Assembly (NCBI GenBank): GCA_002269645.1
Contig: NIVC01001427.1
Coordinates: 62,001 to 126,000, forward strand
Length of the DNA stretch: 64,000 nucleotides
Reading direction: 5' to 3'
DNA from: Macrostomum lignano
Taxonomy: Eukaryota
Part shown: positions 10,664-63,829 of the stretch, one piece after another
Layout of the letters: each line of letters starts with the position of its first letter
Position numbering within the stretch: position 1 is the first letter of the stretch
Notes under the pieces: generated by a model
Database searches by the model: none
What the model was told of the DNA's origin: nothing
Seen by the model: only the letters and a program-made list of their open reading frames with translations
Translations under genes and position numbers: made by a program

Positions 10664-12481
10664 ATGTCGGCGCGACTCCTCATCTGCCTGGCCTTGCTCG
10701 GTGCCGCTGTGTCAGCGGCCGCATCGCCCGCCTCACCTGACGATGCCGTCGCGGCAGCACTGAAGCTCTTCACCGAGTATAACAAAGCGATCCGACCGCC
10801 ACCTGACAGCGGGTTCGCCAACACCCTCAATGTCTTCATCTATCTGAACTCCATCGTTAAAGTGGTGAGCAGTTGTGTTAAAGGAGTCATGCTAAGCTTC
10901 AATGTATTGCCCATGATTGCTCATAAGAGCTTCAATTCAATCGTTGAGTTTCAATAACTATCAGCCAGTGGTGTTGGTGACCATATAAACGTTCATGTCA
11001 TGATTTAGCAGAAGAGAGGGTACTAATTTTGTAATAGATTCTGCCAATTCAGAATGTTTCCCACTATTCTTCAGGATTCCGCAAACCAGGAGATCAAGCT
11101 CAAGGTGTGGCTGCATGTGGTAAGCATATGATGGCTTGTTTTGAGTAATGTCCGAATAGTTCCTGTTGATTATACTAACGTAAACAATTAAATTTTAGCA
11201 CTGGACCGATAGCCGCTTGGCCTGGAAAGGAAAGTTCAACTCCAGTCTGGACAACATCAGTGCAATCAGCCTTCCGGCTTCGTACCTGTGGCAACCGGAC
11301 GCATCTTTTTACGATGTGTGAGCCGCATTCCGAAAAAGGATTTGGGGAAAATAAACAGTTATGAGGAATGAACTTAGGTAGCTATTGACAACATGACTGA
11401 CAATTTAACAGCATTTAGTTTCATGCCTCACTCTAGGGTGGAGCTCTCGGACGCTACAGAAGGCCGCGCGATTCTTTCGGTGATGTCCTCAGGCATTGTG
11501 CTGCGGAGCACAGGAATGATTCTGTCCACCAAGTGCAGCATGCAAATGCAGCTGTTTCCGTTCGATGAGCAAAACTGTATCGTCAGGCTCTCGAGTCTGC
11601 AGCAAGTCACGGGATCGACTCGAGTCCGCATCAAGTCCCTGTTCCAGAATGATGCGCCTGATGTGTACGTCATCAAGAGCAGCGAGTTCTGCATTCTGTG
11701 GGTCCGGCTGGAAAACGGATCGTTTGGAATTTACGACACAGCTGTGCTGCGCGTCCAATTCAAGGTGAAACTTATACAAATCAGTAAAATACATTTAAAG
11801 CCTCGTGTTTATCGCCGACAAGCTTCTAAATCAAGTATTGCCATTTTAGCGACTTCCGACTTTCTACATTATCAACTTGATGCTTCCGAGCATACTGCTA
11901 CTTGGCATTTCTACGCTCGCCTTTTGCCTGCCTCCCGAGTGTGGCGAGCGAGTCTCCTTCAGCATCACCATCGTGCTGTCCATGTGCGTGTTCCTGCAGC
12001 TGGTTGGCAACTACACGCCTACGCAGAGCGAGTCCGTGCCGCTCATCAGTGAGTCTCTCGATTGCTTCCATTGCGTGAGCAGTCTATCTGAATTTAACAC
12101 TTGCCTCACATTCCAGCCTGGTACTTCAGCTTGGCCGTGGTCATGACAATTATGAATGTGCTCTGCAACGCGTTCGTTCTCAGCTGTCACTTCAGGCAGG
12201 AGAGCAGCGTCAGCAGCCGGGTCATCCGTGCACTCTTCCTCAACAGATTTGCTCTCAGACGAAGCTGTCCGCGGAAGGTGGCAAGTGCTGCAACCGATGC
12301 AGACAGCACGCAATCGGATGTCCCTAGCGATGTCCCTAGCGAAAACGAATGGAAGACTGTCGGATCATCCGCTGATCGAGTTTTCTTCAAAGCGTTTGCC
12401 ACTGTTGTAGCCGTAATACTTATTGTGCCGTTCGCTATTTCCTTTGCGTCCTGGAATATGAGCTGCCTTGGAGTGTACTGA
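10664..12481 (+). CDS. nAChR-like Cys-loop subunit, copy C (6 exons, 418 aa); inverted near-duplicate of A
   Basis: Exons 10664-10864, 11075-11119, 11199-11317, 11437-11764, 11850-12048, 12117-12481 (1257 nt, in frame, GT-AG). Same motifs as A; AATAAA near 12575. Confidence 0.92.
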
Positions 12482-19328: not shown

Positions 19329-21037
19329 ATGTCTCTGCAGTGGCTCGTGCTCGCGGCCGCTTCAGCGGCTACTGTTGCCGCCGGAGCAGCAGCCATCGCC
19401 AACGTTTCACCTGACGAGTCGGTGATGGCTGCATTGAAATTCCCACCGAATATAACAGAGCTGCCCGACCTCCACCCGACAATGGCAATGCAAACACGGT
19501 CAACGTTTTTGTCTTTTTTAACGGCATTACAAGATTGGTGCGATAATGTTCTTTGTTCAGTATCGATGGCGGATTTCTGGGGCACAGCTTCAGTTTTGCA
19601 ACTTATTCTCGTTTAATGACGGTCACAATAGAAAACTTACCCAACTGACACAGGATCCCAACATCAATTTCAGGATTCTGCAGTGCAGGAAGTTACTCTG
19701 AGGATTTGGCTAATGACTGTTAGTGCCGATGTATTTCCATATGAATTATGAAAATAAATGCAACACGTTTTCATGCAGGTTGATAACTCATCAAAATTTT
19801 AGCACTGGACTGACACTCGTTATCCTGGTACAACAAGTTCAATGCAACTCTGGATAGCATCGACTTCATCATTGTCCCCGCCAGCCTATTGTGGCAACCT
19901 GATGTCTCCTTCCTGGAAGCGTAAGCCAACACTAACAGAAACGTCCATGGCCATTTCGATCTCTGAGCTACGTGACTCCTACTTAATCTATATTGATTTT
20001 AGCATCGAACTAAAGGATGTGGGAAACAGCCGAGACTTTGTGATGCTACACAACGATGGGACACTGCTCAGGAGCGGCGGCATGGTTCTCACCAGCAAGT
20101 GCAAGATGGAGATGTACCGATTTCCGTTTGACCTGCAGACTTGCGCACTTCGCATAGCGACCATTTTCGATACCACTGGCAGCACGTCTCTAGGGATTCT
20201 GCCACTTAATATTTCCCATGAACTGTATCTGAACAAAAGCAACGAGTTCTGCATTCTGGGCCTTGATTATGAAATAAGTAAGCTGGTAGAGAAAAATGTA
20301 CCCGAATTTCGGATTACTTTTCAGGTAAGACGGCCTCAAAAATAATATCGCAATCGCATAACCCGCAAAGTGCAAAAGCTTTTCATTGCAGCGAATGTCA
20401 ACATTCTACGTGGTGAACCTGATGCTGCCCAGCATCCTCCTCCTCGCCATCTCCGCGCTCGCCTTCCGCATGCCGCCCGAGTGCGGCGAGCGAGTCTCCT
20501 TCAGCATCACCATCGTGCTGTCCATGTGCGTGTTCCTGCAGCTGGCTGGCAACTACACGCCCACGCAGAGCGAGTCCATTCCGCTCATTAGTGAGTTTCT
20601 TTATGCGTTTTAAATTTATTACTGGCTCAGAAACTTTTACGTGATTTTTTCCTGGTACCTCAGCCTGGTACTTCAGCGTAACGTTGCTCATGACTATACT
20701 CAACGTTCTCTGCAATGCTTTTGTGCTCAGCTGTCATTTCAAGAAGCAATGCAGTTTGAAAGTCAGCAATCGTTTTATCCGCGTACTTTTCTTCAACCGT
20801 ATCATGATGAAGAGCACTGCGGGGGCAAAGATTTCTCCCTCGGACTCGGTGGGCCCGCAGCCACAGCAGAATCAAGAGGACACGACTGTGAAGTTCGAAA
20901 ACGACTGGGCTGATGTAGGAGCGCTGGCTGACAAAACATTTTTTGCTGTGTTCCTAGTCGCTACCGCAGTTCTCACCTTGAGTCTAGTCATATTTCAGCT
21001 CTCTGTGTACCGCACAGACTGTTTGGGACTGCTTTGA
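19329..21037 (+). pseudogene. nAChR-like copy E with two single-base deletions (pseudogene or consensus errors)
   Basis: Exons 19329-19537, 19674-19718, 19803-19920, 20003-20324, 20392-20590, 20664-21037. Exon 1 is 209 nt (-1 near 19442, CCC run) and exon 3 is 118 rather than 119 nt (-1 near 19820, TT instead of TTT). Otherwise open; Cys-loop CKMEMYRFPFDLQTC. Confidence 0.85.
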
Positions 21038-26064: not shown

Positions 26065-28918
26065 TCATGCTGTCCTTCGCTTTTGAATTTCATCATCGTG
26101 AAAGTACATCTGCTTCGCTAGACTTCCTCTGGTCTCGATAGTTTGGTACATTTTGGTGCCGTCCGGCTTCTCAACTATTGGTGTGTCCGCCATGTGCGCC
26201 GCGAGCTTGTCGACGATCTCCTTCAGATGGAGTCTCCTTCTGTAGTCGGATATGAACCTGCACAAGTTTTCGATGAAAACTGTTCCTCTCTGGTGCCTGA
26301 ATGAGGCATCGCCTTGAGAGGTGGAGTACACCTCCAGCAGGTCGGAGAGGTCTCTCTGATTGGTTTGTCTCGCTCCTCTAGGAGGAGTCTTAATTGCTTG
26401 GGCTCTGAGATCCTTCTGCAGACATCGGCAAGCCTGGATGAAGAAGACCTTCGGTTTTCCACGGAGGGAGGGGCAGCTTGTGATCGGATCGATGAGATTT
26501 TCTACACTGATGAGCTTCTTACCGGCACTTTCAGTTGCCGGGTTCGTGGGATTTCTGCCTGAAATGTAGGTTCTCCGTGTATCCATGTCGCTGCGGCCGT
26601 GAGCCGACACAATGCAAATAAAGGACGCTTTGGAGCTGTGGTCCTCTTTCCCTACGTCCTGCATTGCACTCCGAAGTTCTTTGGCTGTAGGATTCGAAAT
26701 AAGACGGAACTTGTATCTTAAATTGGTCTGAAAAAGATTCAGTAGCCGATTTTGGTCGTACTCAATGGCCACCCTGTGAGCTTCATCGGACCAGATGGAG
26801 ATGAAAACGACGATGCCGCGATAGCTGGCTCCAGTGATCATGGCAGGGTATCGCCACGTGCGCATCCTGTTAAATTACAGTGTATGTTGATTGACGCTTG
26901 TCAATATCGTTTTACGAGTACGCTTTAGAATTAACACAGAGATGACCGGTACCAGCTCGTATAGGGAGTATAAGGCTAGGACTAAATATATTGATCCATA
27001 GACAGTCTTAAATCTACCAAGAATAAGTGAATGGGTGCTTACAACTTTTTAATGAAATCGACCACAAGATGATGTCCATTCTCCTCTGCGAGGTCGATTG
27101 CTCTCTGATTGAAGCGATTTTTGTGGTTGAAATTGGCTCCCGCTTTTGCTAGCAGTTGAACCATGTCCAGGTGGCCCTTTTCGGCTGCCAAAGTGAACGC
27201 AGTGTTTCCATTGGCGTCCGTGTCCTCAAGATAGTTTGGTTCATCAGCCTCGCAGTAGAATAGAAAAACCCTTAAAGCCTCCTTTTGATCAAGCTCGACA
27301 GCAAGGTGCAGAGGTGTTTTACCATCACTATTTTTGCACCCTAGACAGGCATCACCGCGTTCCTCCAGCAACAACTGAAGAAATTGGGCGTTTTGAAAGT
27401 GAACGGCCAAATGTGCCGCCGAATTTCCAGAGTTGCATTCCAGGAAAACATTTGATCGGTGTTTGAGCAAGTGCGTCACTATTTGTTTACGGCAGCGCCG
27501 TCGGATGGAACAAAGCATGAGAGGCGTGTGACCGTTCTCATCCTCCATGCAGTTTGGATCGGCCCCACATTGGAGAAGCTTCAAGACTGAATCCTGGCTG
27601 TTCGCCTCGACTGCGTGATGCAAGGCCGTCATTCCGTTCGTGTCGCGCAGGTCCACGTGAGCACGCGCATCAAAAAGATCCTGAATCATGCGAACGCGGT
27701 TGAACCTGGCTGCAGTCATGAGCAGACTGCACTGCTGCTCGTCACCGAATGAATCCACGTTGTAAACCGTGCCTAGCAACTTTTTGAATTGATCTCGACA
27801 ATTATTTTGAATAAGTTTGTACAAATTGCCTAATAGAGATGGATCTGAAATTGAGGGTTTATCTTCTGTTATACTGTTGCAATTCAGTCAGCACTATATC
27901 TGTACTAGAAAAATTTGAAGGTGTTCTTTTCCATTGCATATTTAATACTCACCGCTTCTTAAGTCGGTGAGCTGCCGAACAATTTGCGATTGAGACCTAA
28001 AACAATAATTTTCTGTAGGTCAGTAAATACGGTACATAAGAGAATAAAAAAGTTGGTTTGCTAGCCACCGTCTCACCGTTTATCTTTGTAGAGCTTCTCG
28101 AGATATCGGACAATGTCCTGCCTCCCTCGCAGTCGGGCAATGTCGAGCGCTGTCATTCCTGCCCGATTTCGGTGCTCAATGTCCGCATTGGCTTCTTTCA
28201 GGAGTTTCAAATGCCGCACGCCACCACACCTCCCCGCCATTGTGAATGCGGTCTCTCCGTCGGTGCTGACTTTGTCTATACCTTCTTTCATTCTCTCGAG
28301 CAGAAGTTCAGTGATGATGATAGATTTAAGCTTCGAAGCTAAAATCAGTGGCGTGCTGCCATTTTCATCACAAACCGTCAGTTTGCACTTGTCGCTCTCG
28401 ATGATCATTTTTGCTATCTCGACAGCATTGTTCTCGATGGCAATGTGCAATGCGGTTCTTCTGTTCTTGTCGCGCTTTCCTAAGTCAATGTCCGCATTAA
28501 TAAGCCATCTGGCCAATACGATATCTTTAGCTCTATCCTCACTCCTATTGTCGCAGCAGTACATAAGAGCATTGAACTCTTGGTTTTTATCCTGGACAGA
28601 AATATTCACGTCAAACTGCTCCCTTTCATCGACTAAGATTTTCGCGGCTTTCAGCTTACCAAACGAAGCTGCAAGGATCAGCGGAGTGCAGCCCCCTCCT
28701 CCTCTCTGACTGTTTGGGTCAGCTTTCTTCTGCAGGAGAAAGCGAACAACCTCTGGATTATCGCTCATCACAGCGAGGCCAAGCAGAGTCATCTCTGTTA
28801 TTTTGTCGAAAAAGTTTGCTCCACGTATTCCGTGGGTGCGAATATACTTTTTCAGCTCTTGCAGGTCTCCATCATAGGCAGCCTTCGACTGCCGCGGCAA
28901 CTTGTCCAATTGGGACAT
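26065..28918 (-). CDS. Ankyrin-repeat + caspase (peptidase C14) fusion protein 1, 4 exons, 829 aa
   Basis: Exons 28918-28077, 27996-27953, 27844-27043, 26866-26065 join with GT-AG sites and matching phases (2, 1, 2): 2490 nt. Two blocks of roughly 7 ankyrin repeats (TPLILAA, TALHIA, TAFTMAG; TALHHAV, TPLHLAV, TAFTLAA). Caspase domain with SAHG, KPKVFFIQACRC and SFRHQRGTVFI. Confidence 0.9.
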
Positions 28919-30199
28919 AGCCCGAAATGTCCTTCAGTGAACAGCAACGACGTCCTTCGAATCGGAGCATTAGGCTCCTACAGTTATATGCGCTCTTGTA
29001 GACAATAAGATTTGTAATGAGTGCATTTATATAGCCACTTTACAAATTGGAGCTAGACACTGAGATGAGTGGTAATTGTAGTATGTAAATCCAAGACCCC
29101 TTGAACAATAGCGCTGTGCCAGCCGTTAAACCCTCGAGCAAGTGTCTGTCCCGCTATGTTGGCTAGTCTATTATTGTGAGTCAGCCGATGCTCAGCACTT
29201 TTTGCAAAAGTGCCGTTTTTGCATCTCTCTTCATGTCTGTTCATAAAAGTGTAACTATTTTGGAATATTACGCTGCAGTGACGCAAAGTTTCTTGTTTCA
29301 ATCCAATTCTGTGCCAGTGAGTCACTGCCTAATTGCTAATTTTAAATTCATTTAACCGTCCTTTTAAAACTGCAAGTGACATTTGATATGTCATCCATTT
29401 AACAATCGTGAGATTGAATAAGGCTTCTCCTATGAGGAATACTCAATTTGACTATTCTATAACGTAACTCGATGTTTTTCTGCTATGGTTTGAGAAAAAT
29501 ATGAGTTTCAAAATGTATGAAAGCATTGTAACTTTAACTCGATAGGTCTCGGCTTGAGTGATTTCAAACTGCTGTTGGCTGAATTTCAAAAAGCTATTTT
29601 GGTGCATCTTATGCTAGCCCCGCATCTCCCTAACTCACTCATGCTGTCATGCAGCACAGAAGTTAAGCAGTGTCATTAAAAATTCATTAGCGTGTGAAGG
29701 AAGGGGGGCGCGATGTATCCCGAGATACTTTTGCCATCTTATAAAATGGGTAAGTGAATGGACAGCAGCCCTCTTTCGCCCTTTGTAGGACTCTGCTCGG
29801 ACTCAACCGCAGCGGCATCGGGGCGGTATCCACGGCTCTCTCGGATCAAGGGTGCCCCGCTAGGAAGCTGCCAGAAGTTAGCGGAATGGGCGGCGACGAC
29901 TCCCCGCTCCCAGCCCCATGCAGCCAGGTCAAGTAAGTCAATAAGAGTGCGAAACACCTTTTTATAGAATTTTTATAGAATAAACAGTAAATAGTTAAAC
30001 AAAGCTTGCAAATTCCAGATTAAAATAATGTATTTAAAAAATTCGCTTCACATTGGTTAAAAGACATAGCAAGTACGAGCGTATGTAGAGTATTTCATCT
30101 CCTTTAAAAATCTATAAACATTGTTAACATGCTACTTGTACAGTAGTATAGCAAAGGCACGTACAAAAATAAGTATTGAACCATGGCTACATTTGAATC

Positions 30200-31040
30200 A
30201 ACCAATAGAAAGAGAGAAGAAATCTCGAGCATGCTAATTTTAGAAATCACCCAATCACGTGCGACCAACAACTGTCAATTCAAACCCCACCTTCAAGTCA
30301 TCATTTGGTTTGCACTCGGGTTGCACCCGGATGAACCAATCAAAGTCTACCAGCTACGGTAACCAATCATGCGCTTTTACAGTAGACTAGTTGCGCAACT
30401 TTCTACCCTGTCATGGTTGACAGCCACCGAATCGTGACCCTTTGACATTTGCGAAGACAGTGATGTACGACCTCGAGAGAGGTCCGAACGCCTATAAATA
30501 CAAGTGGTCCGGAGCGGACCCGGAGCCAACAATTCCTCCGGAAGGAGAAGAGCTCCGAAGAGGAAGCCACAGTCGGACTTCCTGGACCAAGACTCGGTCG
30601 ATTGTTGCGGTAAGCCTTCCTGTTGCGCCCGTTACTGTTAGAGACGTCTCGCTCAAGTCTAGTGTGACTTGAGTTTAGTTGAGTCTGTTGAGACTCTTGA
30701 GTCTGTTTAGACTCCACTGGTTGCAGTCTCCAGAAGGACTGCCCCTGATAGATCTTAGAAGCATAGCAGTGGTTTCCGGAGCTATTCCTAGAGTGCATAG
30801 AGGCACTGCTAGAAGAAGGAGGCTTAATTAAGACCGCAGTTTGGCACAGGGTACCCATTGTTAATTGGAAGCTTCCCATTGGTCTACACGACAGATACCG
30901 GCCGGCGAGAAATAACGGAAGAGGACTTACCTGACCAGGCTCCCGGAGCGAAGCAAAGTTACTCGGCAAACTTCAAGGACCACTGTGCGACAACTATGCA
31001 AGGAAGAGATCAACTGATCAGTACCCAAGGTAATAAAAAC
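30200..31040 (+). promoter_or_regulatory. CCAAT x4 + TATA + downstream AATAAA block, LTR-like promoter between the two ankyrin-caspase genes
   Basis: CCAAT at 30202, 30251, 30336, 30363; TATAAA at 30493; AATAAA at 31032. Order fits U3-R of an LTR, but TG..CA ends and a TSD could not be fixed. Confidence 0.3.
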
Positions 31041-31659
31041 CTTCATTTGACTACTGGGTTGCCTAGCTAAAGAGCTAGAAGTGAGTGTTCCTTGATTACT
31101 AAGAAAGTCTTGGTAGTAAGGAACACATCACGTACTTCTTTATAGGATAGCTAGTATTTGGAATTTTGTATCTTTTATATTCATAGATACAAAATGTAGC
31201 CATAAACAAAATTTTAGAGGCCATTTTATTGTTTAAAATTCAAATGAAAAGAAGAATGCGTGCAAATATCCTTTTGCATTAACCGAGAGATTCTTTTTAG
31301 TCGAGCAGGTAAATATTTGAGGGCAAACGTATTGGCTTTAATAAAAATTAAATTGCTTACAAGTATCCTACTTGTAAAGATATGAAGCATAAAGCGTTCT
31401 CCAGTAAAGAGAGTTTTTCTATGCAAAAAAACCTTTACTGCAACGCTTATATATAGTGCCCGCACTTATCAAAGGGCGTTCTATAGAATGTTTCGGAATT
31501 ATAGCTAGAGCCCGTTACTTCAGCCTCCTTACCGAAACTTTTGTATTGAGTTTAAAAGTTTAACTGCTAATAATAACTCTGAAACTTGAGACTGCAAAAC
31601 AGTATGCACAGTTTCATCCAAACACATGTAAACGAAATCTGTATATTATAAATAATGAT

Positions 31660-34403
31660 TCACGGAAAGAAGAACACACGCTTTGGCAGATTACCCTTGA
31701 TTTGAACAGTTTGGTAGTTCTCGTCTTCATCGCTGAAACTGACGGACTTCTAGTTGAGGTGGTCCGCAAGTCTGTCAACAATATCTCGCAAATGCTCCGT
31801 GTCCATGTACTCCCACATATACTGGCAGAACTCCTGCAAGAAAAGCGTGCCTTTTTGGTGCCTGAAGGCCGCATCGCCGCGCGAAGTCGCATGCACTTCG
31901 AGCAAGTCAGCTGCTTGTCTCTGGTTTGGCTGCCTTGTCCTTTTAGCTGTTTTGACCGCCTTTTGCCTGAGACCGGTCTGGAAGGTTCGGCACGCCTGAT
32001 AAAAGAAAATCTTCGGTTTGCCTCTGAGAGTTCGGTTATTCGATATTGGCTCAGTGAAGTTTTCCAGACTGATGAGCTGCTTGCCGGCGCTTTCGGTTCT
32101 GGGGTTGATGGGTTCCATGCCACGCATGTAGTCCTTGTTTGTCTCTTCGTCACTGCTTCCGTGGGACGATACAAAGCACACAAATGAAGCGCTCGATGAA
32201 AAGTCTCTTTCCTGCAAATCTAGCATGAGCTCCTGCATTTTCTTGGCCGTTAGATTCGTATACGGAATAAACTTATATTTGAGTTCCGTTTGGAACCGCT
32301 CTCGAACACTGTTCTCATCGTAGCCCATTGCTAAACTGCGGTCACTATATGGGTCATTTGCAATGTAGATGCAAGTGCCCGGATGGCTGCTGCCCGGCAT
32401 CTTGAACGGGTATCGCCCAATGATTTGCAGTCTGCAGGTGTTTATAAACAAAGCGATCAAAATTATGACGTTTACGGTCTTGTGTTTATTACAAGAATGA
32501 CACAAATTAGAAACAGAACTGAGAGTGCTCACCGTTTTTTAATAAACTTGATTACATCGTCACTTTTTGATACCTTGATAGCGTCTTCACTATGCTTATT
32601 TTTGTGGCGCAAGTCGGCTCCAGCATCGGCCAGAAGCTGAACACTTCTCAGGTCTTCCATCTTAGCAGCCAATGTAAAAGCCGTGTTGCCATCCGAATCC
32701 GTCGCTTCCAGGAAATCTCGAAGCTGACTGTCTCGTTCACTCTCGGGCATTTTCGCTACATCAACATTAATTTTTTCTTAAAATCGCTTCTAGCGCCTCC
32801 TGGCACTTGAGACTCACTGCCAGCATAAGGGGAGTGAACAAGTCACTGTTTGTGTTTGAGAGGCTTTCTTTGGCATTTTGGCGTAGCAGTTGTTGCACTA
32901 AGTATTTTTTATTGGTGCGTACTGCGAGATGGATCACAGTTTCGTTAGAACGCTTGCATCGTTGAGTTAAATTGATATTGTAACGTAGAAGGGGTTTCGC
33001 TGCTTCGATGAGACGTGCTTGAACGGATTTCTTCTTGCACTCTGTCAACTCGTTCATGCACATCATCAGTGGAGTGAAGCCATCAACCGAGTCTTTAATA
33101 TTCGGATCTGCATTCAGTCTCAGTAGCTCCTCTGTGATATTGCGGCTTTCCGCTAGCACGGCGTGATGCAGCGCCGTCCGGCCGTTCTCGTCGGTTTTGT
33201 TCACATCGGCACCCTGCTTCACGAGATATTTCACGACAGCTATGAACTTGGAGTCAACGGCAGCCTTGAGAAGATCTGTCAGCAGTTTTTTTTTTAAACT
33301 TCTTTATCTCGCAGGATTCTGACAAGGTCTTGAATTTCACGAAAACCGTTCTTCCTATCACTCGTCCTTTTTATCAGATCGTGCAGCGCGCTTATAATTT
33401 CAGCGTCTGGAAATCCGGAATGGAGAAAAAATAGCTTGGGGAAGCTGGCAGAATTCGAAGAAACCCGGTTCATAAAAACATACCAGTCCGCCTGTCTCTT
33501 TCCAGTTCGATAACTGCGGCTAATTCACTTGTTGTCTCATCGGAAGGTCTGCGGTCTGTATGACTGGCAGATGCAACAGATCTGGATTGCTGACTTCTCT
33601 GGGTGCAAGGACCACTAGAAAGTACCGTTGTACGACCATTGCTTCTAGCGGTCCTTGTTTGAGTGTTCTCTTCCGACCTGCAGTTTTAAATTCATTGAGT
33701 ACATGCTTGGCTCTGATCTTTTCCGTAGTACACAATTTCAAAGTACGCATAAATACATTTGTTTCGTACCTGGCGCTCACAGACAACGATCTCAGGTACT
33801 TAGCTATCGCGCCTCTATTCAGACGTTCAGCGATAGCGAGTGCAGTCTCTCCGTTGTTATTCTTATGAGAAATGTCGGCACCAGCTTTGTATAGAAGTGT
33901 GACCTGTTCCAGCTTACCGCGAGCTGCCGCAACTGTAAATGCCGTGTCACCATCGTCGTTTCTCCAGTTAATCGATTCCCGCACATCGGGATGCAACAAT
34001 AAAGCCTTAGTCACTGTTTGAAGCCCCCCTCTACTGATGCCAGAATCAAAGGTGTATTTTTCTTATTATTCGCCGTCGTCAGGCATTTGCTGCACTCGCT
34101 GCTATCAATAAGCATGCGAATTATCTCCAGAGCACGACTTCCAATTGCAATATGCAAAGCCGTGCTACCCTCTTTGTCCTGCTTGTCAAGGTCAATGCCT
34201 TCTTTAATAAGAAGCTCAGCTGTCTGGACATTCACTGCCAAAAGAGTCTGGACAAAAGAGTTTGAGACTGCTCTGGTGAGTAGGTGCATGTCGCATTCCT
34301 TGTCACAGTACCTCGCTTTCACCTTTTTGTTTTTAATGCATCTTTCAAGCTGCTCGAGATTTCCAGAATCAACCAACTGAAAAAGAGTTGGTCGTGAGCT
34401 CAT
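31660..34403 (-). pseudogene. Ankyrin-repeat + caspase fusion gene 2, disrupted paralog
   Basis: Exons about 34403-33770, 33617-33486, 33406-32533, 32431-31660 with the same intron phases as gene 1. Frameshifts at the G run near 34025, the T/A run near 33290 and the A run near 32772. Caspase SSHG and KPKIFFYQACRT; in-frame TAG at 31750-31752 precedes the conserved tail YQTVQIKGNLPKRVFFFP. Confidence 0.85.
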
Positions 34404-41515: not shown

Positions 41516-42060
41516 TCCCAAGACTGCAAGCATCCCCCAGATAGCAAGCATCCCCAAGATAGCAAGCATCCCCAAGATAGCAAGCATCCCCCAGATAGCA
41601 AGCATCCCAAGACTGCAAGCATCCCCAAGATAGCAAGCATCCCCCAGATTGCAAGCATCCCCCAGATAGCAAGCATCCCCAAGATAGCAAGCATCCCCCA
41701 GATAGCAAGCATCCCCCAGATAGCAAGCATCCCCAAGATAGCAAGCATCCCTCAGATAGCAAGCATCCCCCAGATAGCAAGCATCCCCAGATAGCAAGCA
41801 TCCCCAAGATAGCAAGCATCCCTCAGATAGCAAGCATCCCCCAGATAGCAAGCATCCCCAGATAGCAAGCATCCCCCAGATAGCAAGCATCCCCAAGATA
41901 GCAAGCATCCCTCAGATAGCAAGCATCCCCCAGATAGCAAGCATCCCCCAGATAGCAAGCATCCCCCAGATAGCAAGCATCCCCAAGATAGCAAGCATCC
42001 CCAAGATAGCAAGCATCCCCCAGATAGCAAGCATCCCCCAGATTGCAAGCATCCACCAGA
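41516..42060. repeat. 18-bp minisatellite GATAGCAAGCATCCCCCA
   Basis: About 30 tandem units with variable C-run; source of several spurious ORFs. Confidence 0.95.
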
Positions 42061-42159
42061 CAATAAGTAGCTAGTGCGACAATTTCCTTAGCATTATAGC
42101 GGCTCCTTTAAAATTCGCTTACTTTTACGTTTGAAATTGTGTATCTTTTATGTTTAACA

Positions 42160-43330
42160 GGGTGGCTCTTTTATGTCATACATTGTGGCTCTTTTATGTT
42201 ATACATTGTGGCTCTTTTTTGTTATACATTGTGGCTCTTTTATGTTATATATTGTGGCTCTTTTTTGTTATACATTGTGGCTCTTTTATGTTATACATTG
42301 TGGCTCTTTTTTGTTCTACGCTCGTACATGGTAACTCTTTTATGTTTGATACGGTGGCTTTTCAATGTCTGACATAGTGGCTCTTCTATGTTTGACATGG
42401 GGGCTCTTCTATGTTTGACATGGGGGCTCTTCTATGTTTGACAAAGTGGCTTTTTAATGTTTGACATGGTGGCTCTATTATGTTTGACATGGTGGCTCTT
42501 TAATGTTCGAAATGGTGGTTCTTTAATGTTCAAAAAGGTGGCTCTTTTATGTTTGACATGATGGCTCTTTAATGTTTGACATGGTGGCTCTTTAATGTTT
42601 GACATGGTGGCTCTTTAATGTTAGACAAAGTAGCTCTTTAATGTTTGACATGATGGCTCTTTAATGTTGGACATGGTGGCTCTTTAATGTTAGACATGGT
42701 GGCTCTTTAATGTTTGACATAAAGTCACTTATATGTTTGACATGATGGCTCTTTTATGTTTAACATGGTGGCTCTTTAATGTTTGACATGGTAGCTCTTT
42801 TATGTTCGACATGGTGGCTCTTTAATGTTCGACATGGTGGCTCTTTTATGTTTGACATGGTGTCGCTTCAATGTTTGACATGGCGGCTCTTTAATGTTCG
42901 ACATGGTGGCTCTTTAATGTTTGACATGGTAACTCTTTTATGTTTGATATGGTGGCTCTTTTATGTTCGACATGGTGGCTCTTTAATGTTCGACATGGTG
43001 GCTCTTTTAGGTTTGAAATGGTGGCTCTTTAATGTTTGACATTGTGGCTCTTTAATGTTTGACATGGTGGCTTTTTAATGTTCGACATGGTGGCTCTTTT
43101 ATGTTTGATATGGTGGCTCTTTTATGTTTGACATGGTGGCTCTTTAATGTTCGACATGGTGGCTCTTTTAGGTTTGACATGGTGGCTCTTTAATGTTTGA
43201 CATGGTGGCTCTTTAATGTTCGACATGGTGGCTCTTTAATGTTTGACATGGTAACTCTTTAATGTTTGACATTGTGGCTCTTTAATGTTTGACATGGTGG
43301 CTTTTTAATGTTCGACATGGTGGCTCTTTA
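42160..43330. repeat. About 23-bp minisatellite GGTGGCTCTTTAATGTTTGACAT
   Basis: About 50 diverged tandem units; left-end variant TGTGGCTCTTTTATGTTATACAT. Confidence 0.95.
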
Positions 43331-44214
43331 ATGTTTAGAATTTTGTGTTTTTTAAGGTGTTTTAATAAAAAAAACATTTTTCACTACTAAGATTCGAACC
43401 AAGGTCGCTACATTTGCATTCCAGTCTGTTTGCATCCGGCTATCTCTTTTCAATTGGAGAACATGACTTGTGGCCCTTATAATTCAATACTTATAGCAAG
43501 TCGGTTAGAGTAAAAAGTTATGACATAATCAATTTCTCAGTCAGCCAGTATCAGTCTCAATTCAAGTTAGCAATATGGTTACGCAATTTAAATCAAGTCT
43601 TGTGTGCATTTCTTCGGCACTGTTTTCAACTGGTTGTGATGCAATCTTTATCACAATCGGAATTCAGCCAGTCAGTTTTTTCTCTAGCATTCTTACAATG
43701 CATTTCAGGTCGAAAGAGCTGCTTGACCTTTGCAAAAAAGCATGTTTTTCGAATATTTAATCCCTTTAATATTGAGCAATTTCTTAGCCAAGATGCATGT
43801 ACTGTCCCAGGAAAATTTCTGATCGAATGGTGCAAGTTTGAAGAAAATCGGTTAAGCTGTTTTTTCTGAAATCTATCTCACAGAGACACACATTTCATTT
43901 TTAGTATATAGGATTTTGCATTAGATACTTGAAATTTTTACAAAATTCTTTTTGTTTTTACTTTCTTCAACAGGTTAGCTTGCTTGCCCCTAGTCAAGAA
44001 ACAACTTTAATCTTATACTATAAGCCTATTTGAAATTTTGATTAGCATTTATACTTATATACAGTTTTTTAATTAGAATTTCTAAAGTGTTTTAAGATTT
44101 TTTCAATGGGCCTAAACAAATAACAATATGTTTCTATGCTTTTTGGTGCCTATGCTTTTTGGTGCCCTAGTGTATGATGCTTAAATAATAAAAAAGTAAT
44201 CTAATAATAGTATA

Positions 44215-45554
44215 CAAGTGTTATTTCAAAAGTTCATAGAAAGTGATAAAAAGCAAGCAGATATCAAAAAGCTGGTTGCAACACATTAATCAGCATCTCA
44301 ATTTGATCTCTCAATGTAATTGCCACATATACACATATGTATACATATATACACATATATACACATTCGCATGCACTATAGCCAGCTATCAAAGCAACCC
44401 TTAAAATCAGCTTTTTCAATGGAGTTGAGCTGCTCATTCACAGTAAAAATCAGCTCATCACAAGTCAAACAACTTTCATATAGCGGCTGCTTGATTTTCA
44501 GAAATAACCAAAAAACACACAATGCCAGATCCAGTGAATACGACAGAGTGCTCAGCAGCTTGATGCTAGAAGCATGAATGTCTTGCACTGTGTTGTTCAT
44601 TGTGTGCGCAGGTGCGTTATTGTGATGTAGGAAGTAGTGGCATAGCTTAGCTTTGCCATGGCCAGCTGCAATGGAATTGAACACAATGAGCAAAAAGCTG
44701 GTCATGTACCAATCAGATGTCACAGTGCAGCCTTTCTCAATAGGCACTAAGGCTACAATGCCTCTGGGTGAGAAGAAAATTGCAAACATGATTTTCCCAG
44801 CTGACCTCATCTGCTTTGCCTTTTGCAGAGGTGGGGCTCCTTTCAGTGACCAAAACATTGACTGTGATTTAGTTTGCGGGTCGTACTGATAACACTAGGC
44901 TTCATCACCTGTGACAATATTCTGAAAGTTTGCAGATGCTCCATCTTTTAACTGATCCAGGAAATTTTTGTAGAAATCAATTCTCTGCTGCTTCTGCTCA
45001 GGCAAGAGGATTTGTGGCACCCATTTGACAGCTTTCTTGGTGACACCAAAATCTTCATGCAAGATCCTCCAAATCAATGTGGCATCAATGCCCAAACTCT
45101 CCTCCATCTTCTCAATTGTTAGTCTTGCATCCTTGTTCAATGCTCACTGCACAGCAGCCACATTTAAGGAGTCTGTTGATGTTCTTGGATGACCATCTCT
45201 TGGCTCATCAGCCAGATTGAAATGGCTGGCTCTAAAGCAACCAAACCACTTGTGTACAGTGCTAAGCGATAGAGCTTCATCTTGCAATACAGTCTTCATC
45301 TTAGCAGTAGCTTCATTTGCGCTAGAGCCTCAATGAAACAGAAACATCATTATGGCTCTTGACTGCTCCTTGGAGAATGCAGGAAATGCAGTGGGGGTTC
45401 AGAGTTTGATTGCAGATTTCTGGTGGCCATTTCAATTAATTTTGCTGAAAATTTAGCTATAGGCTTTGGGTATATGAAATAGTATTTGTGAAAAGTTTCA
45501 AGGCTATAGCTTAATGCAAAGATGGCTTTTCTAAAACTTTTGAAATACCCCTTG
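44215..45554 (-). mobile_element. Full-length but inactive mariner transposon (1340 bp)
   Basis: TIRs CAAGTGTTATTTCAAAAGTT and AACTTTTTGAAATACCCCTTG with TA on both sides. Transposase with HTH (TVHKWF), KWVPQIL, IVTGDE, HNNAPAH (third-to-second catalytic region degraded) and YSLDLA (YSPDLAP); internal stops. Confidence 0.92.
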
Positions 45555-49139: not shown

Positions 49140-49490
49140 TCTCATCTACTCTCATCCTTCTCTGTCTACTCCCACTCTTGTCTGCGTCTAATCTCACCCT
49201 TCTCTGTCTACTCCCACTATTGTCTGCGTCTACTCTCATCCTTCTCTGTCTCTCCACTCTTGTCTGCGTCTAATCTCACCCTTCTCTCTCTACTCCCACT
49301 CTTGTCTGCGTCTAATCTCACCCTTCTCTCTCTACTCCCACTCTTGTCTGCGTCTACTCTCATCCTTCTCTGTCTACTCCCACTCTTGTCTGCGTCTAAT
49401 CTCACCCTTCTCTCTCTACTCCCACTCTTGTCTGCGTCTAATCTCACCTTCTCTGTCCACTCCCACTCTTGTCTGCGTCTACTCGCAGTT
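49140..49490. repeat. 42-bp minisatellite
   Basis: CTACTCCCACTCTTGTCTGCGTCTAATCTCACCCTTCTCTGT, about 8 units. Confidence 0.92.
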
Positions 49491-52724: not shown

Positions 52725-53010
52725 GTCTGAAGGGTCTGGGGAGCCAGCGGCACCATCTGAAGGGTCTGGGGAGACAGCGATACCATCTGAAGGGTCTGGG
52801 GAGACAGCGGCGCCATCTGAAGGGTCTGGGGAGACAGCGGCGTCATTTGAAGGGTCTGGGGAGACAGCGGCACCATCTGAAGGGTCTGGGGAGGCAGTTG
52901 CACCATTTGAAGAGTCTGGGGAGACAGCGGCACCATCTGAAGGGTCTGGGGAGCCAGCTGCACCATCTGAAGGGTCTGGGAGACAGCGGCGTCATCTGAA
53001 GGGTCTGGGG
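52725..53010. repeat. 30-bp minisatellite
   Basis: GGAGACAGCGGCACCATCTGAAGGGTCTGG, about 9 units. Confidence 0.92.
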
Positions 53011-53669
53011 GGCAGCGGAAAAAGCAATTAAAAAATATATTAGCCAGATCATAATTATAGAAGTCGCTAATTCTTTGGGTGGACCAGAAACCGCTAAAAG
53101 CAGTTAACTAAACGCACTCAAATATGCTTTTAGTTTCCGCTCCGCTTTCAACTCTCAATTCAACGGTGCATTTTCGGCCAGTGCTTTGAAGTGTTTCCTG
53201 GATTGGGGAGTGAGGAGGCCAGGAACCAGGCCTAAGCAATTTGTCAGCTCAGTGTGACTGGCAATTGGGTGCAGTAAAATAATATAATATTTGGGGCAAT
53301 TAATGCGCAGTCTAGCGCCTGCGTCAGAGCTGCTTGAGTGCGTCTCTTGTGTTTGCATCTGTGCCCCCCCCCAGACGGCTAGCTCTGGCTGCGGTGCACT
53401 CATGGCCATTCGCAACACTTGCTTCTTGGCCTGCAGGCTTTGCAGAAAACTTTTCGCCTTTCGCTGTATTCCGGAGCTTCTGCGTCTCAGATAAACTGTT
53501 TTCTTTAACTAATTTTCTATTTCATGGTCTTATTGTCGTAGAGGGACCCAGATGAACTAGCAAAATATTAATATCGATTTTCTGTTGATTTTAGCTACTA
53601 TATGCTTTTATTTATTGTCTGTCTGTGCCCCAGGACCTCCGGATCAGTCTCTTTGAATCCCTACCACGG

Positions 53670-54380
53670 TAACCGTCCCTGCATCCCAACCTCCCCACAG
53701 TAGCTTCTCTGCATCCCACCCTCCCCTCAGTAGCCTCCCTGCATCCCACCCTCCCCTCAGTAGCCTCCCTGCATCCCACCCTCCCCACAGTAGCTTCCCT
53801 GCATCCCACCCTCCCCACAGTAGCTTCTCTGCATCCCACCCTCCCCTCAGTAGCCTCCCTGCATCCCAACCTCCCCACAGTAGCCTCCCTGCATCCCACC
53901 CTCCCCACAGTAGCTTCTCTGCATCCCACCCTCCCCACAGTACCCGTCCCTGCATCCCACCCTCCCCACAGTACCCGTCCCTGCATCCCAACCTCCCCAC
54001 AGTAGCTTCTCTGCATCCCACCCTCCCCTCAGTAGCCTCCCTGCATCCCACCCTCCCCTCAGTAGCCTCTCTGCATCCCACCCTCCCCACAGTAGCCTCC
54101 CTGCATCCCACCCTCCCCACAGTACCCGTCCCTGCATCCCATCCTCCCCACAGTACCCGTCCCTGCATCCCACCCTCCCCACAGTACCCGTCCCTGCATC
54201 CCACCCTCCCCACAGTACCCGTCCCTGCATCCCACCCTCCCCACAGTACCCGTCCCTGCATCCCACCCTCCCCACAGTACCCGTCCCTGCATCCCACCCT
54301 CCCCACAGTACCCGTCCCTGCATCCCACCCTCCCCACAGTACCCGTCCCTGCATCCCACCTTCCCCACAGTACCCTCTGC
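53670..54380. repeat. 30/31-bp C-rich minisatellite
   Basis: CAGTAGCCTCCCTGCATCCCACCCTCCCCA and variant CAGTACCCGTCCCTGCATCCCACCCTCCCCA. Confidence 0.93.
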
Positions 54381-54617
54381 CACACCCGCCCTGCATCCTA
54401 TGATTCCCTATCCCAGTTGCAGTACCCAGAAGCACCCAACAGTTCAGCCAGCGATTCTCCCCCTGCAGTTTGCAGCCCAGCCCGCACCGCAAGCACCAGC
54501 AGCTCTGACACTCCCTGACACCCCGGCAGCAGCACCCGAATGACCGGTCGGCACTGATCGTTGGGCCGCCATCCGCACAGGCTATTAAATGTCCCACACG
54601 GCAGTGCAGCCGTCCAC

Positions 54618-54825
54618 ATGGAGAAGCCGCCACATCCGCAGCAGCAGCAGCAGCTGTTAACTGGGGCCGTCAGTTTGCGCTCAAAGAAGCCCGCCGGTCC
54701 CGCCGGCCGTTTCGCCGACTCGGGTGCCGCCGCCGCGGCCGCAGCGGCCGCTGTCGCCGCAGCCCAGGATCGGGGAGTGTCTTGCAAGAGCATCGTTTCG
54801 TTGAATAACTGGACTGATTTTTTCG
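54618..54825 (+). CDS. Candidate first coding exon of the downstream RhoGEF
   Basis: ATG at 54618, GC3-rich MEKPPHPQQQQQ..AAAAAAAA..NNWTDFF, donor G|GTGAGA at 54826. Its phase 1 matches the acceptor CTGCAG| at 61308. The link is inferred only from phase compatibility. Confidence 0.35.
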
Positions 54826-54889
54826 GTGAGAATGGTGTGCTTAACTTAGGGCTTTATTGGTTTCTGTTAAGCCTTTACCTCTTAATCGC

Positions 54890-55300
54890 CTCTTAGCATC
54901 ATCAAGAATCGCCCCTTAGCATCATCATGAATCGTCTCTTAAAATAATGAAAAATCGCCCCTTAGCATCATCAAGAATCGCCCATTAGCATCATTAAGAA
55001 TCACTCCTTATCATCATCGTCATCATCATCATCATCATGAATCACCCTTAGCATCATCAAGAATCGCCCATTAGCATCATTAAGAATCACTCCTTATCAT
55101 CATCGTCATCATCATCATCATCATGAATCACCCTTAGCATCATCAAGAATCGCCCATTAGCATCATTAAGAATCACTCCTTATCATCATCGTCATCATCA
55201 TCATCATGAATCACCCTTAGCATCATCAAGAATCTCCCCTTAGCATCGTCAAGAATCGCCCCTTAGCATCGTCAAGAATCTCCCCTTAGCATAATCAAGA
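54890..55300. repeat. Compound repeat: about 22-bp CCCTTAGCATCATCAAGAATCG units with (CAT)n in a larger triplicated block
   Basis: Direct reading of tandem units. Confidence 0.88.
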
Positions 55301-55844
55301 GTCGCCATGCCCACGAGAATCGCCATTCACCTTCAAATGTTCACCTCACGGTGCAGTCAGTCTCTATTTACTTACACCAGTTCGTTCGCTGGTCTGAAAT
55401 CGGCTAAGGACACAGTGAACTTGCAACTTAGCATCTGTATATCACGGGTGCTGCACCGCAGTGGCTTCAGCTTACATAATATGAGATATGAGAGCGGGAC
55501 TGACTCATACCACACAGACAGGCAAACTCGAACATCTACTGGTAGCACAGTGTGTGTCACTCAGCCAGCCAGCCAGCCAGCCAGCCGTTACCGCGCATTG
55601 CGCAAAAGTGCACCGGAATGACTCACTCTAAGTGTTCGAGGCCAGTTCCTTCCTGGCACCTACGCATGTGTTGGGGAGAAGGGAGCGCGACTGTGGAATA
55701 TAATTGGCACTCTGCCCCGTGCTTATTGTTGAACTGCTCAAATCAACTTCTAGATATAGAAGACTTTTCTAAATTTATCTGACCTGACTTAAAACTATCA
55801 GAATCATTAGCGGTATATCATATCAACTACTTAGCAACAAATAG

Positions 55845-56460
55845 AATACTGTAATTACTGGATACTGTAATATAGTGTACTGTAATTACTGGATACTGTA
55901 ATATAGTGTACTGTAATTACTGGATACTGTAATATAGTGTACTGTAATTAATGGATACTGTAATATAGTGTACTGTAATTAATGGATACTGTAATATATT
56001 GTGCTGTAATTACTGGATACTGTAATATAGTGTGCTGTAATTAATGGATACTGTAATATAGTGTACTGTAATTACTGGATACTGTAATATAGTGTACTGT
56101 AATTAATGGATACTGTAATATAGTGTACTGTAATTACTGGATACTGTAATATTGTGTACTGTAATTAATGGATACTGTAATATTGTGTACTGTAATTAAT
56201 GGATACTGTAATATAGTGTACTGTAATTACTGGATACTGTAATATAGTGTACTGTAATTAATGGATACTGTAATATAGTGTACTGTAATTACTGGATACT
56301 GTAATATAGTGTACTGTAATTACTGGATACTGTAATATTGTGTACTGTAATTAATGGATACTGTAATATAGTGTACTGTAATTAATGGATACTGTAATAT
56401 ATTGTGCTGTAATTACTGGATACTGTAATATAGTGTACTGTAATTACTGGATACTGTAAT
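55845..56460. repeat. 31-bp AT-rich minisatellite
   Basis: TACTGTAATTACTGGATACTGTAATATAGTG, itself a dimer of TACTGTAAT-initiated halves. Confidence 0.95.
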
Positions 56461-56854
56461 ACGAACGTATTGGATGCTATAATGAGCTTCGGAGAGCTAG
56501 ATAAGGACATCAGCTCCTCTCTCTCTTATTCCCCATCTCAAAGCGCAGTTAAGCAGGAGGCGCCAGTCAGCCCAGAAACTTGTGTGCTCAAGTTGAGTTG
56601 GCTGGCGGTTGGGCGAGCTGGAGGGCAGAGAGGGGAAGCCAAGGCTGGGGAGTTTCGGGAGTTAAACAAAATCTAATTCGGTCGGGCCTCTGTCAGTTCA
56701 ACTAATGGAGCTGCAATTTTTTGCTGGGTTTATTCGCATGCGGCGAATTCGCTACTGGCTACTGGCCAAACTGTCATCAGTAGACAGTGCAGTGTTTTCA
56801 TCTCTTCAGCTGCTTTGGCATAGGGGAGGCAAGAGGACACTGCGAAGAAATCTG

Positions 56855-59250: not shown

Positions 59251-59894
59251 GGAGAAGTTGGCAGTCCAGGTTCTCGGTTCCAGGTGTCCTTGTGCAGAGC
59301 TACAATATACAGCAGTTGGGCACGTTGGCCGCGCGAAAATTTGCTCGCTAACTGGCTGGGCGACCCGCGCCTTTTCCATTCAGGCGCGGGCAATTCATTC
59401 ACAGCAGCCTGGGGCTTCGCCTGCCTTCCTGATCCCCAGTTGGCGGTCGAGGGAGGGAATGAGGAACGAGGACAAAGCCGCATTCCACTGCGGGGATTTT
59501 GTAGGGAAGAAGAGATGAGGGAGACTAGGGAAGTTCGGGAGCCGAGAGGCTTTTGGTGGGTGAAGATTTGCGGCTGGTGGCTTCTCTGCCAACCCATCCT
59601 CCTGGCGGCCAAGTGCTGCGCGGTACGAGCTGGTTGCTGTCTGGCTGTACGGTTGGCGGCATTTGGGCCGGCTGCCGCCTTCATATTGTGTATATATAAT
59701 GTGTGTTGCTGGCCCCTAGTCTAGTGCACAAAAGTGCAGCCAGGGCAATTCTAACTTGTGCAAGCTGAAGCTGCGATTTTGGAAAGATCTGCTAAAATCA
59801 ACATAGAAGAGATTTTTATCATCGAGTTAAAAACTTCACTCTGTAAACGGTGAGTGATCTTTTAAATATCGGTTTATATTGGTTTCATAGGCTG

Positions 59895-60365
59895 AGAGTA
59901 GAGAATAGAGGAGAGGTGAGGTGAGGAGATGAGGGAGGAGAGGTGAGAAGAGAGGAGAGAAGAGAAGAGAGGAGAAAGGAGAGCAGATGAGAGGAGAGGA
60001 GAGGAGAGAGGAGAGAGAACAGGAGAGGAGAGAAGAGAGGAGAGAGAACAGGAGAGGAGAGAAGAGATGAGAGAGAACAGGAGAGGAGAGAAGAGAGGAG
60101 AAAGGAGAGCAGATGAGAGGAGAGGAGAGAAGAGCGGAGAGAGAACAGGAGAGGAGAGAAGAGAGGAGAGAGAACAGGAGAGGAGAGAAGAGAGGAGAGA
60201 GAACAGGAGAGGAGAGAAGAGAGGAGAGAGAACAGGAGAGGAGAGAAGAGAGGAGAGAGAACAGGAGAGGAGAGAAGAGAGGAGAGAGAACAGGAGAGGA
60301 GAGAAGAGAGGAGAAAGGAGAGGAGAGAAGAGAGGAGAGGAGAGAGGAGAGGAGAGAGTTAGAGA
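59895..60365. repeat. GA-rich tandem repeat
   Basis: GAGAGGAGAGAAGAGAGGAGAGAGAACAG-type units. Confidence 0.93.
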
Positions 60366-62084: not shown

Positions 62085-62117
<33 letters not shown>

Positions 62118-62239
62118 CAGACAGACAGACAGACAGACAGACACAGACAGACAGACAGACACAGACAGACAGACACAGACAGACAGACAGACAGACAGAC
62201 CAGACAGACAGACACAGACAGACAGGCAGGCAGGCAGAC

Positions 62240-62286
<47 letters not shown>

Positions 62287-62309
62287 GGCAGGCAGGCAGG
62301 CAGACAGAC

Positions 62310-62343
<34 letters not shown>

Positions 62344-62466
62344 CAGACAGACAGACACAGACAGACAGCAGACAGAACAGACAGACAGACACAGACAGAC
62401 AGCAGACAGAACAGACAGACAGACAGACAGACACAGACAGACAGGCAGACAGACAGACAGGCAGGC

Positions 62467-62523
<57 letters not shown>

Positions 62524-63646: not shown

Positions 63647-63829
63647 GTGAGTCCTTGGATGCTTGCTTGCCGCTGCGCCAGTTCTCTTTGCTGTTTGCCA
63701 GCCCCTGGTAAACACGGGGCCGCGTGCCACTGGTTAAACTTTCCTTCGATGAACAACTGGCGATGTTTTCTAAACCAATTTGCCTTCAAATCTGCCCGCT
63801 CCGCCCCTTGTGGAAATCCGCCGCACTGA

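Follow-up and report, generated by a model that had tools for sequence, protein, structure and literature searches.

How does a free-living flatworm come to encode a caspase behind an array of ankyrin repeats, is the combination one protein, and what kind of protease would it be? These questions are raised by a 64,000-nucleotide stretch of the Macrostomum lignano genome (contig NIVC01001427.1, positions 62,001 to 126,000; hereafter the window, whose own numbering is used throughout), in which open reading frames for ankyrin repeats and for a caspase domain follow one another on the minus strand between positions 28918 and 26065. Our analysis showed that the locus is an expressed gene of M. lignano, Mlig019599, encoding a single polypeptide of 829 amino acids. 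We conclude from sequence comparison that this protein is an ANK caspase by architecture and that it represents a separate, Macrostomum-restricted subtype.

Four exons, all on the minus strand, make up the gene. Exon 1 (28077-28918; 842 nt) opens with the start codon ATG at 28918-28916, encodes residues 1-281 with the first block of ankyrin repeats and ends at the donor AACG/GTGAGA. Intron 1 (27997-28076; 80 nt, GT..AG) separates it from exon 2 (27953-27996), a micro-exon of 44 nt whose product SQSQIVRQLTDLRS (residues ~282-295) forms a flexible linker between the two ankyrin blocks. After intron 2 (27845-27952; 108 nt, GT..AG), exon 3 (27043-27844; 802 nt, residues ~296-563) encodes the second ankyrin block, and intron 3 (26867-27042; 176 nt, GT..AG, phase 2) lies exactly at the boundary between the ankyrin and caspase parts. 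Exon 4 (26065-26866; 802 nt) carries residues 563-829 and the stop codon TGA at 26067-26065, and with them the whole caspase domain, consisting of a p20-like part, a short basic linker and a p10-like part. Spliced together, the four exons gave a coding sequence of 2490 nt for 829 residues and a stop, and all three introns were phase-compatible. The original prediction for this locus, made from the nucleotide sequence alone, had joined separate open reading frames through the 44-nt micro-exon into an 829-residue protein, and its junctions at 28077/27996, 27953/27844 and 27043/26866 proved exact, each with GT..AG borders.

The translated open reading frame was identical at every residue to GenBank entry PAA68042.1 ('hypothetical protein BOX15_Mlig019599g1 [Macrostomum lignano]'), and a second copy, PAA85923.1 (g2), showed 98% identity to it. 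The GenBank models of M. lignano derive from genome-guided assembly of RNA sequencing (RNA-seq) data, using StringTie/TACO, trans-splice and poly(A) boundary calling and TransDecoder, and not from ab initio prediction (PMC5730564). Because this annotation is RNA-seq-derived, the splice model of Mlig019599 has indirect RNA support. The micro-exon peptide also occurs in P0006 and P0007, two gene models of older, independent origin, and the older models likewise span the junctions. A literature search on four Mlig gene identifiers found no expression or functional data. At the exon 4 acceptor (26866-26867) the AG is followed by G/ATG, such that the caspase exon opens with a methionine of its own (M564); given the widespread spliced-leader trans-splicing in this species, the acceptor could additionally give rise to a caspase-only mRNA.

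Pfam placed Peptidase_C14 (PF00656; MEROPS C14A) at residues 592-795 with a score of 97 bits, where the curated cut-off is 21.4 (E=1.8e-27), and phmmer aligned the domain to caspase-3 structures at E~3e-18. In the AlphaFold2 model, the structural elements followed the order β1-α1-β2-α2-β3-α3-β4/β5-α4-α5-β6 with a predicted local distance difference test (pLDDT) score mostly >85, which corresponds to a predicted canonical caspase-hemoglobinase fold, and Foldseek matched the C-terminal part to chains of caspase-7 and caspase-3 with template modelling (TM) scores of 0.78-0.81. The key residues were placed by three alignments, made to caspase-3 structures, within a trimmed set of 26 sequences and within a set of 30 caspases. 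The catalytic histidine is His652 (SAHG; codon CAC, 26599-26601), which together with the adjacent invariant Gly653 corresponds to H121-G122 of caspase-3, and the catalytic cysteine is Cys709 (QACRC; codon TGC, 26428-26430), where Q707-A708-C709 corresponds to Q161-A162-C163. Arg594 (HRVAIEYD; codon AGG, 26773-26775), the first arginine of the S1 pocket, aligned to caspase-3 R64, and the second, Arg753 (SFRH; codon AGG, 26296-26298), aligned to R207. R594, H652-G653, Q707-A708-C709 and R753 occupied invariant or nearly invariant columns among the 30 caspases. According to the alignment, a basic S1 pocket formed by Arg594, Gln707 and Arg753 is retained, as for Asp specificity, and the four motifs that had been singled out beforehand as carrying the catalytic dyad and the Asp-pocket arginines (SAHG, QACRC, HRVAIEYD and SFRH) all aligned to the right residues. 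Identity as a metacaspase, paracaspase or CHAT protease was set aside, as the S1 pocket is basic and the best matches were all animal caspases.

Two further features of the protease domain were apparent from comparison with a tandem paralogue, described below. An insertion of ~10-15 residues follows the catalytic histidine, and its core, NPxTESAGKxLIS, is kept in both tandem paralogues. The stretch between C709 and strand β5 (residues 712-737) is basic and contains Asp715 and Asp735, neither of which is conserved in the paralogue; in the intersubunit linker, only the structural Asp738 at the start of the 'DxL' strand is conserved between the two.

The remainder of the protein is built from ankyrin repeats. 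Pfam assigned ankyrin families over residues 1 to ~565 (Ank_2, E=4.9e-80), and the combination of Ank and Peptidase_C14 was thus found in one protein, as the original prediction had it. No CARD (PF00619), DED (PF01335) or Death (PF00531) match was obtained from Pfam at E<=0.01 anywhere in the 829 residues, in agreement with the earlier statement that these domains are missing, and residues 1-565 of the AlphaFold2 model consisted of ankyrin helix pairs only, with no death fold. A self-trained hidden Markov model of the repeat recognized 14 clear repeats, at residues 41-283 and 330-565, while AlphaFold2 showed 16 helix-pair repeats (8 + 8, at residues ~9-278 and 297-565; mean pLDDT 83); the figure of about 14 repeats given beforehand therefore holds for the clear repeats but slightly undercounts the predicted structure. 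Foldseek matches for the N-terminal part were to ankyrin-B/R and DARPins.

The two blocks differ in how they are joined to what follows. Between them, residues 280-295 form a disordered stretch (pLDDT <50) that is the product of the micro-exon. The final repeat of the second block leads directly to the caspase fold, and the junction (…VVDFIKKL/MRTWRYPAMITGASYRGIVVF) contains neither a flexible linker nor an Asp. The predicted TM score (pTM) was 0.42 for the full-length protein and 0.62 (pLDDT 86) for block 2 and the caspase domain modelled alone. From these models the ankyrin-caspase junction is predicted to be ordered (pLDDT ~80), and the mutual orientation of the two parts is predicted with only moderate confidence.

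Fusions of this kind have been published, as the original prediction had suspected for invertebrates. Krasovec et al. (Genome Biol Evol, 2024) named them 'ANK caspases' and recovered them as a maximally supported clade that is sister to DED caspases (PMC11463336). Schistosoma provided the first example (Lee et al. 2014, cited in PMC11463336). The clade is described as "specifically restricted to parasitic platyhelminths", apart from a single convergent instance in the annelid Alitta virens; free-living flatworms are said to have no ANK caspases and M. lignano is credited only with a kinase-prodomain caspase (PMC11463336). Krasovec et al. used the same PAA accessions as the present annotation, and the main text does not mention Mlig019599 or its relatives (PMC11463336). 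The novelty first suggested for this locus was consequently overstated, as the architecture has been published (PMC11463336) and the protein was already in GenBank. The new element is more limited, namely a divergent ANK caspase subtype in a free-living flatworm, where Krasovec et al. report none (PMC11463336). Mlig019599 shares the prodomain architecture that defines ANK caspases; in our neighbour-joining (NJ) tree it was not a member of the parasite clade, and its distribution is not parasite-only.

At least four Ank+C14 gene groups were found in the GenBank annotation of M. lignano. These are Mlig019599 itself (PAA68042.1; 829 residues), Mlig017129 (PAA85924.1; 823 residues; 48% caspase-domain identity to Mlig019599), Mlig013715 with A0A1I8F2E4 (722 and 862 residues; PAA63849.1 for Mlig013715) and Mlig019067 g1-g4 (PAA94436.1; 599 residues; UniRef name Caspase-8). 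Mlig017129 has the same two-block layout and the same phase of the junction intron as Mlig019599, and differs by QACRT and by a longer linker between the blocks. Mlig013715 differs by a prodomain of near-identical ~60-residue units and by a split caspase exon, whereas Mlig019067 is caspase-8-like, has a long linker and groups with the parasite ANK caspases.

When 1.84 billion representative proteins were searched exhaustively with HMMER, only two matches <1e-30 were obtained, both from M. lignano. Among the best 150 matches, an ankyrin N-terminus was found in four M. lignano proteins, in a Taenia solium 'Caspase-8' and in Tk00894 (EukProt). A word-indexed search with the caspase domain returned three weak matches (26-29% identity), none of them from Macrostomum, and was uninformative on architecture. 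Scores were ranked by best domain, as whole-sequence phmmer sums the scores of proteins with tandem caspase domains and is misleading for them. Ranked in this way, Mlig019599 scored 18-27 bits against parasite ANK caspases, which occupied ranks 202-272 of 279 caspases, and showed no particular similarity to caspase-8 (18 bits). After Mlig017129, the closest protease domain was that of Mlig013715 (94-97 bits), and identity to caspases outside the Mlig019599/Mlig017129/Mlig013715 group was 22-31%. Mlig019067 had as its best non-self match a Mesocestoides ANK caspase at 177 bits, compared with 171 bits for fish caspase-8.

These relationships were also reflected in the NJ tree, which is rough (26 sequences, 231 columns, 300 bootstraps, with the domains cut around the QAC motif) and in which long-branch effects are possible. 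Mlig019599 joined Mlig017129 (100%) and Mlig013715 (71%) on a long branch outside the parasite ANK-caspase clade, and Mlig019067 joined the parasite ANK caspases (79% bootstrap). Taken together, these comparisons showed that, at the level of sequence, Mlig019599, Mlig017129 and more distantly Mlig013715 form a small, fast-evolving group that was Macrostomum-only in these searches. The subtype may go back to the same ancestral fusion and have diverged fast thereafter, or it may stem from a fusion of its own; with branches this long, an NJ tree cannot tell the two histories apart.

Some additional observations were made on the members of this wider family. The caspase domain is split by an intron in both Mlig013715 (L002 6001-8797) and Mlig019067 (L003 6001-9919), at positions that are approximate as they derive from tblastn blocks, and the intron of Mlig019067 lies, with the same approximation, at or beside the QACRG codons. 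The ankyrin prodomains of A0A1I8F2E4 (P0034) and Mlig013715 (P0162) are composed of near-identical units of ~60 residues (…NEATNSCLKWLVNECGTDCLSVRDQQGNTPVHLAAWKQGADSMQFFKSVLGSDCFHQPG…), which points to a very recent internal repeat expansion. Tk00894 (P0147, EukProt), which from its EukProt label we take to belong to the copepod Tigriopus kingsejongensis, is a 756-residue protein with Ank repeats and Peptidase_C14 (NACRG) and a truncated C-terminus; if the model is real it could be an arthropod Ank-caspase, and mis-prediction could also account for it. According to Krasovec et al., no ANK caspase has been observed in arthropods (PMC11463336).

The tandem paralogue, a Mlig017129-type Ank-caspase (31660-34403, minus strand), lies 2.7 kb upstream of Mlig019599 on the same strand, has the same Ank-Ank-caspase layout with QACRT and is 48% identical to it in the caspase domain. 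In both genes the Ank/caspase boundary is marked by a phase-2 intron, and the caspase domain itself is not interrupted by introns. Because the paralogue shares the layout and the phase-2 boundary intron, the Ank-caspase architecture is older than the tandem duplication. The same gene pair, with both members intact, was present at a homeologous locus (NIVC01000301.1; L001). Comparison of Mlig019599 between the window and L001 revealed zero exonic indels, 12 gap positions in introns and 19 amino-acid changes. The synonymous divergence (dS) was 0.038, similar in scale to an intron divergence of 0.042, and the ratio of non-synonymous to synonymous divergence (dN/dS) was 0.29 (Ank 0.32, caspase 0.25); this ratio and the lack of exonic indels indicate that both the ankyrin and the caspase parts are under purifying selection.

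The copy of the tandem paralogue in the window departs from its counterpart at L001 by three frameshifts, +GG at 34029-34028, -T at ~33299 and +A at 32776, each within a homopolymer run, and by a change of GAG to TAG at 31752-31750 through which the last 29 residues, strand β6 included, are lost. Since P0008, a model built on an older assembly, stops at the same residue, the TAG is probably real; the three indels could be assembly errors. We initially read the frameshifts as proof of pseudogenisation and have softened this reading, given that homopolymer indels are typical of long-read assembly error and that the TAG alone was corroborated; the window copy of the paralogue may be decaying. The spacer between the two genes (29398-31653 in the window, 8042-9509 in L001) was unalignable between the homeologous loci (2256 vs 1468 bp) while its flanks were 97-98% identical, which suggests an insertion, a deletion or a mobile element. 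The ~480 bp upstream of the Mlig019599 ATG were conserved between the window and L001.

What kind of protease might this be? We consider it moderately probable, with confidence going no further than that, that Mlig019599 is an apical, initiator-type Asp-specific protease in which ankyrin solenoids replace the death-fold recruitment domain. An initiator is proposed because the prodomain, at 563 residues, is long and initiator-like. In the mechanism that we propose, the ankyrin solenoids would bind a protein partner or scaffold, partner binding would gather two or more Mlig019599 molecules, and the gathered caspase domains would dimerise and become active by induced proximity, as has been established for caspase-8, caspase-9 and Dronc. 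Activation would need no Asp cleavage in the intersubunit linker, a step that is proposed because no linker Asp is conserved between the paralogues as a processing site. The active enzyme would then cleave executioner caspases or other substrates, leading to cell death or signalling. Flatworms are reported to be without FADD, and parasitic flatworms to have exchanged DED caspases for ANK caspases; this loss and replacement suggest an ankyrin-based recruitment route (PMC11463336).

Several points weigh against an initiator of this kind. By sequence, the protease domain is closer to the executioner caspases-3/-7 than to caspase-8/-9, and its nearest named matches outside Macrostomum, from fish, frog, sea cucumber and sponge, were caspase-3/-7-like. 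Executioner caspases are constitutive dimers activated by cleavage and not by proximity, which, given this resemblance, counts in the same direction. The fifth position of the QACxG motif is occupied by Cys711 and not by the Gly that was present in >=90% of aligned caspases; Drosophila Dredd is likewise without this Gly, so that its change need not abolish activity. Block 2 abuts the protease through a junction that is predicted to be ordered (pLDDT ~80), an arrangement that would equally fit a fixed exosite or a gate. Lastly, no experimental activity, partner or phenotype data were found for Mlig019599 or other ANK caspases, and no partner candidates were identified for the Mlig019599 solenoids.

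Alternatively, the protein may be a caspase-3/7-like effector of the executioner type, where the ankyrin solenoids would serve as a substrate-recruiting or localising exosite and not as an activation platform. The top-scoring PDB and database entries from outside Macrostomum, which are caspase-3/-7-like, the Foldseek TM scores of 0.78-0.81 to caspase-3/-7 and the rigid, predicted ordered junction between ankyrin repeats and protease are all consistent with such an enzyme. We nevertheless regard it as rather doubtful in view of the 563-residue prodomain and of a linker without a conserved Asp for an upstream caspase to cleave; moreover, identity is low (22-31%) and the branch long, and the resemblance may merely reflect divergence.

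The original prediction had instead envisaged a one-component sensor-protease in which the ankyrin solenoid shuts the active site and opens on a pathogen or danger ligand, in the manner of RNase L. The family has expanded within one lineage, duplicated in tandem, diverged fast and left one copy disrupted, as is typical of immune or conflict genes; block 2 is joined to the protease without a linker, and the adaptor Caiap provides a precedent for ANK-caspase contact. Such a sensor, though plausible, is nonetheless unlikely, as any contact between the ankyrin repeats and the active site is conjectural at a pTM of only 0.62 for block 2 and caspase, a dN/dS of 0.29 gave no hint of positive selection across the short distance between homeologues, no ligand is known and the literature search found no expression or infection data. 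It is also distinctly improbable, in our judgement, that the fusion in Mlig019599, Mlig017129 and Mlig013715 arose independently of that in parasites and produced adaptor-free sensors in which direct binding of a pathogen- or damage-derived ligand by the solenoids dimerises the caspase, in effect a one-protein inflammasome. If this were true, the Ank-caspase fusion would have been invented repeatedly (in macrostomids, in the parasitic-flatworm lineage related to Mlig019067, in an annelid and possibly in a copepod), and repeated fusion would have served to restore cell-death signalling once the FADD/DED machinery had been lost.

A catalytically weak or dead regulator resembling cFLIP, in which a divergent caspase-like domain would act as decoy or scaffold, could be argued from the very divergent protease domain (two matches <1e-30 among 1.84 billion proteins), from QACRC (QACRT in the paralogue) in place of QACxG and from the ~10-15-residue insertion after the catalytic histidine. 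We hold this to be very unlikely, given that all catalytic and S1 residues are kept in both paralogues and both homeologues, that the gene is under purifying selection and that known pseudo-caspases are usually without the Cys or the His. That the gene model is chimeric, with the ankyrin and caspase exons on separate mRNAs through use of the exon 4 acceptor for spliced-leader trans-splicing, for example, is scarcely credible, since the many polycistronic, trans-spliced units of M. lignano (PMC5730564), the G/ATG start of exon 4 and the caveat on chimeric predictions raised by Krasovec et al. for unusual annelid caspases (PMC11463336) are set against three phase-compatible introns, an 829-residue open reading frame that is identical in the RNA-derived annotation and 98% conserved without indels at the homeologous locus, a tandem paralogue with the same fusion and phase-2 boundary intron, and junctions crossed in older independent models.

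Elsewhere in the window, plus-strand open reading frames at 11393-12052 and 19842-20345 matched the neurotransmitter-gated ion-channel ligand-binding domain (PF02931; E=3.5e-10 and 4e-08) and probably belong, as exons, to one or two genes for Cys-loop receptors. The right third showed a jump in guanine-cytosine (GC) content and GC skew and was dense in tandem repeats (41526-43336, 49145-49484, 52726-55306, 55847-56461, 56856-59255, 59894-60357 and 62085-63406). An open reading frame of 984 residues at 56730-59684, along with another of 857 residues, was rejected as a gene, being the product of a 22-bp unit repeated 109 times (56856-59255). The minus-strand open reading frame at 44376-44858 gave a weak match to a mariner-type transposase DDE domain (PF01359, E=6.8e-05, just below the cut-off) and is probably a transposon remnant. 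At the edge of the window, the plus-strand open reading frame at 62993-63829 contained a partial RhoGEF domain (PF00621, E=1.3e-06) and may be an exon of a guanine nucleotide exchange factor gene.

To our knowledge, no ANK caspase has a known function. The family has been presented as a parasitic-flatworm adaptation that replaced the lost FADD/DED-caspase pathway (PMC11463336). The presence of several Ank-caspases in M. lignano, one of them a caspase-8-like probable orthologue (Mlig019067) of the parasite genes and the others a distinct group with 16 repeats that includes Mlig019599, argues against a "parasite-specific" reading and suggests that ankyrin prodomains joined caspases before parasitism, or did so more than once. 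RNA interference is routine in M. lignano. The species is also a free-living model with established transgenesis (PMC5730564), in which the activity, the partners and the cell-death phenotypes of ANK caspases are testable.

The closest known systems are the ANK caspases of parasites (e.g. Taenia solium KAL5963490.1, P0150), which like Mlig019599 come from flatworms, carry an ankyrin prodomain before p20/p10 and have no CARD or DED. They possess few repeats, a long low-complexity linker of about 200-300 residues and a conventional caspase-8-like domain with QACRG, whereas the 16 repeats of Mlig019599 are split into two blocks and adjoin, without a linker, a caspase-3/7-like domain that is highly divergent and carries QACRC, and its host is free-living. 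With the death-fold initiators (caspase-8/-10 with DED; caspase-2/-9, CED-3 and Dronc with CARD) it shares a long interaction prodomain ahead of a complete caspase domain, but their prodomain is a six-helix death fold and that of Mlig019599 an ankyrin solenoid, and its linker is without a conserved Asp processing site. Its highest sequence similarity is to the executioner group (caspase-3/-6/-7), yet those enzymes have a short prodomain and are cleaved at a linker Asp, in contrast to a prodomain of 563 residues and to Asp715 and Asp735 that are not conserved.

Outside the caspases, RNase L also combines an N-terminal ankyrin array with a C-terminal hydrolytic effector, and ligand bound on its ankyrin repeats drives dimerisation and activation; its pseudokinase and RNase effector set it apart, and no homology to Mlig019599 is implied. 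Caiap, likened here by architecture and not by sequence, has 16 ankyrin repeats that work with a caspase: active caspase-1 is bound by its ANK domain, which also stabilises large complexes. It differs in being a stand-alone adaptor that carries a CARD but no protease domain, whereas Mlig019599 unites the ankyrin repeats and the protease in one polypeptide with no CARD.

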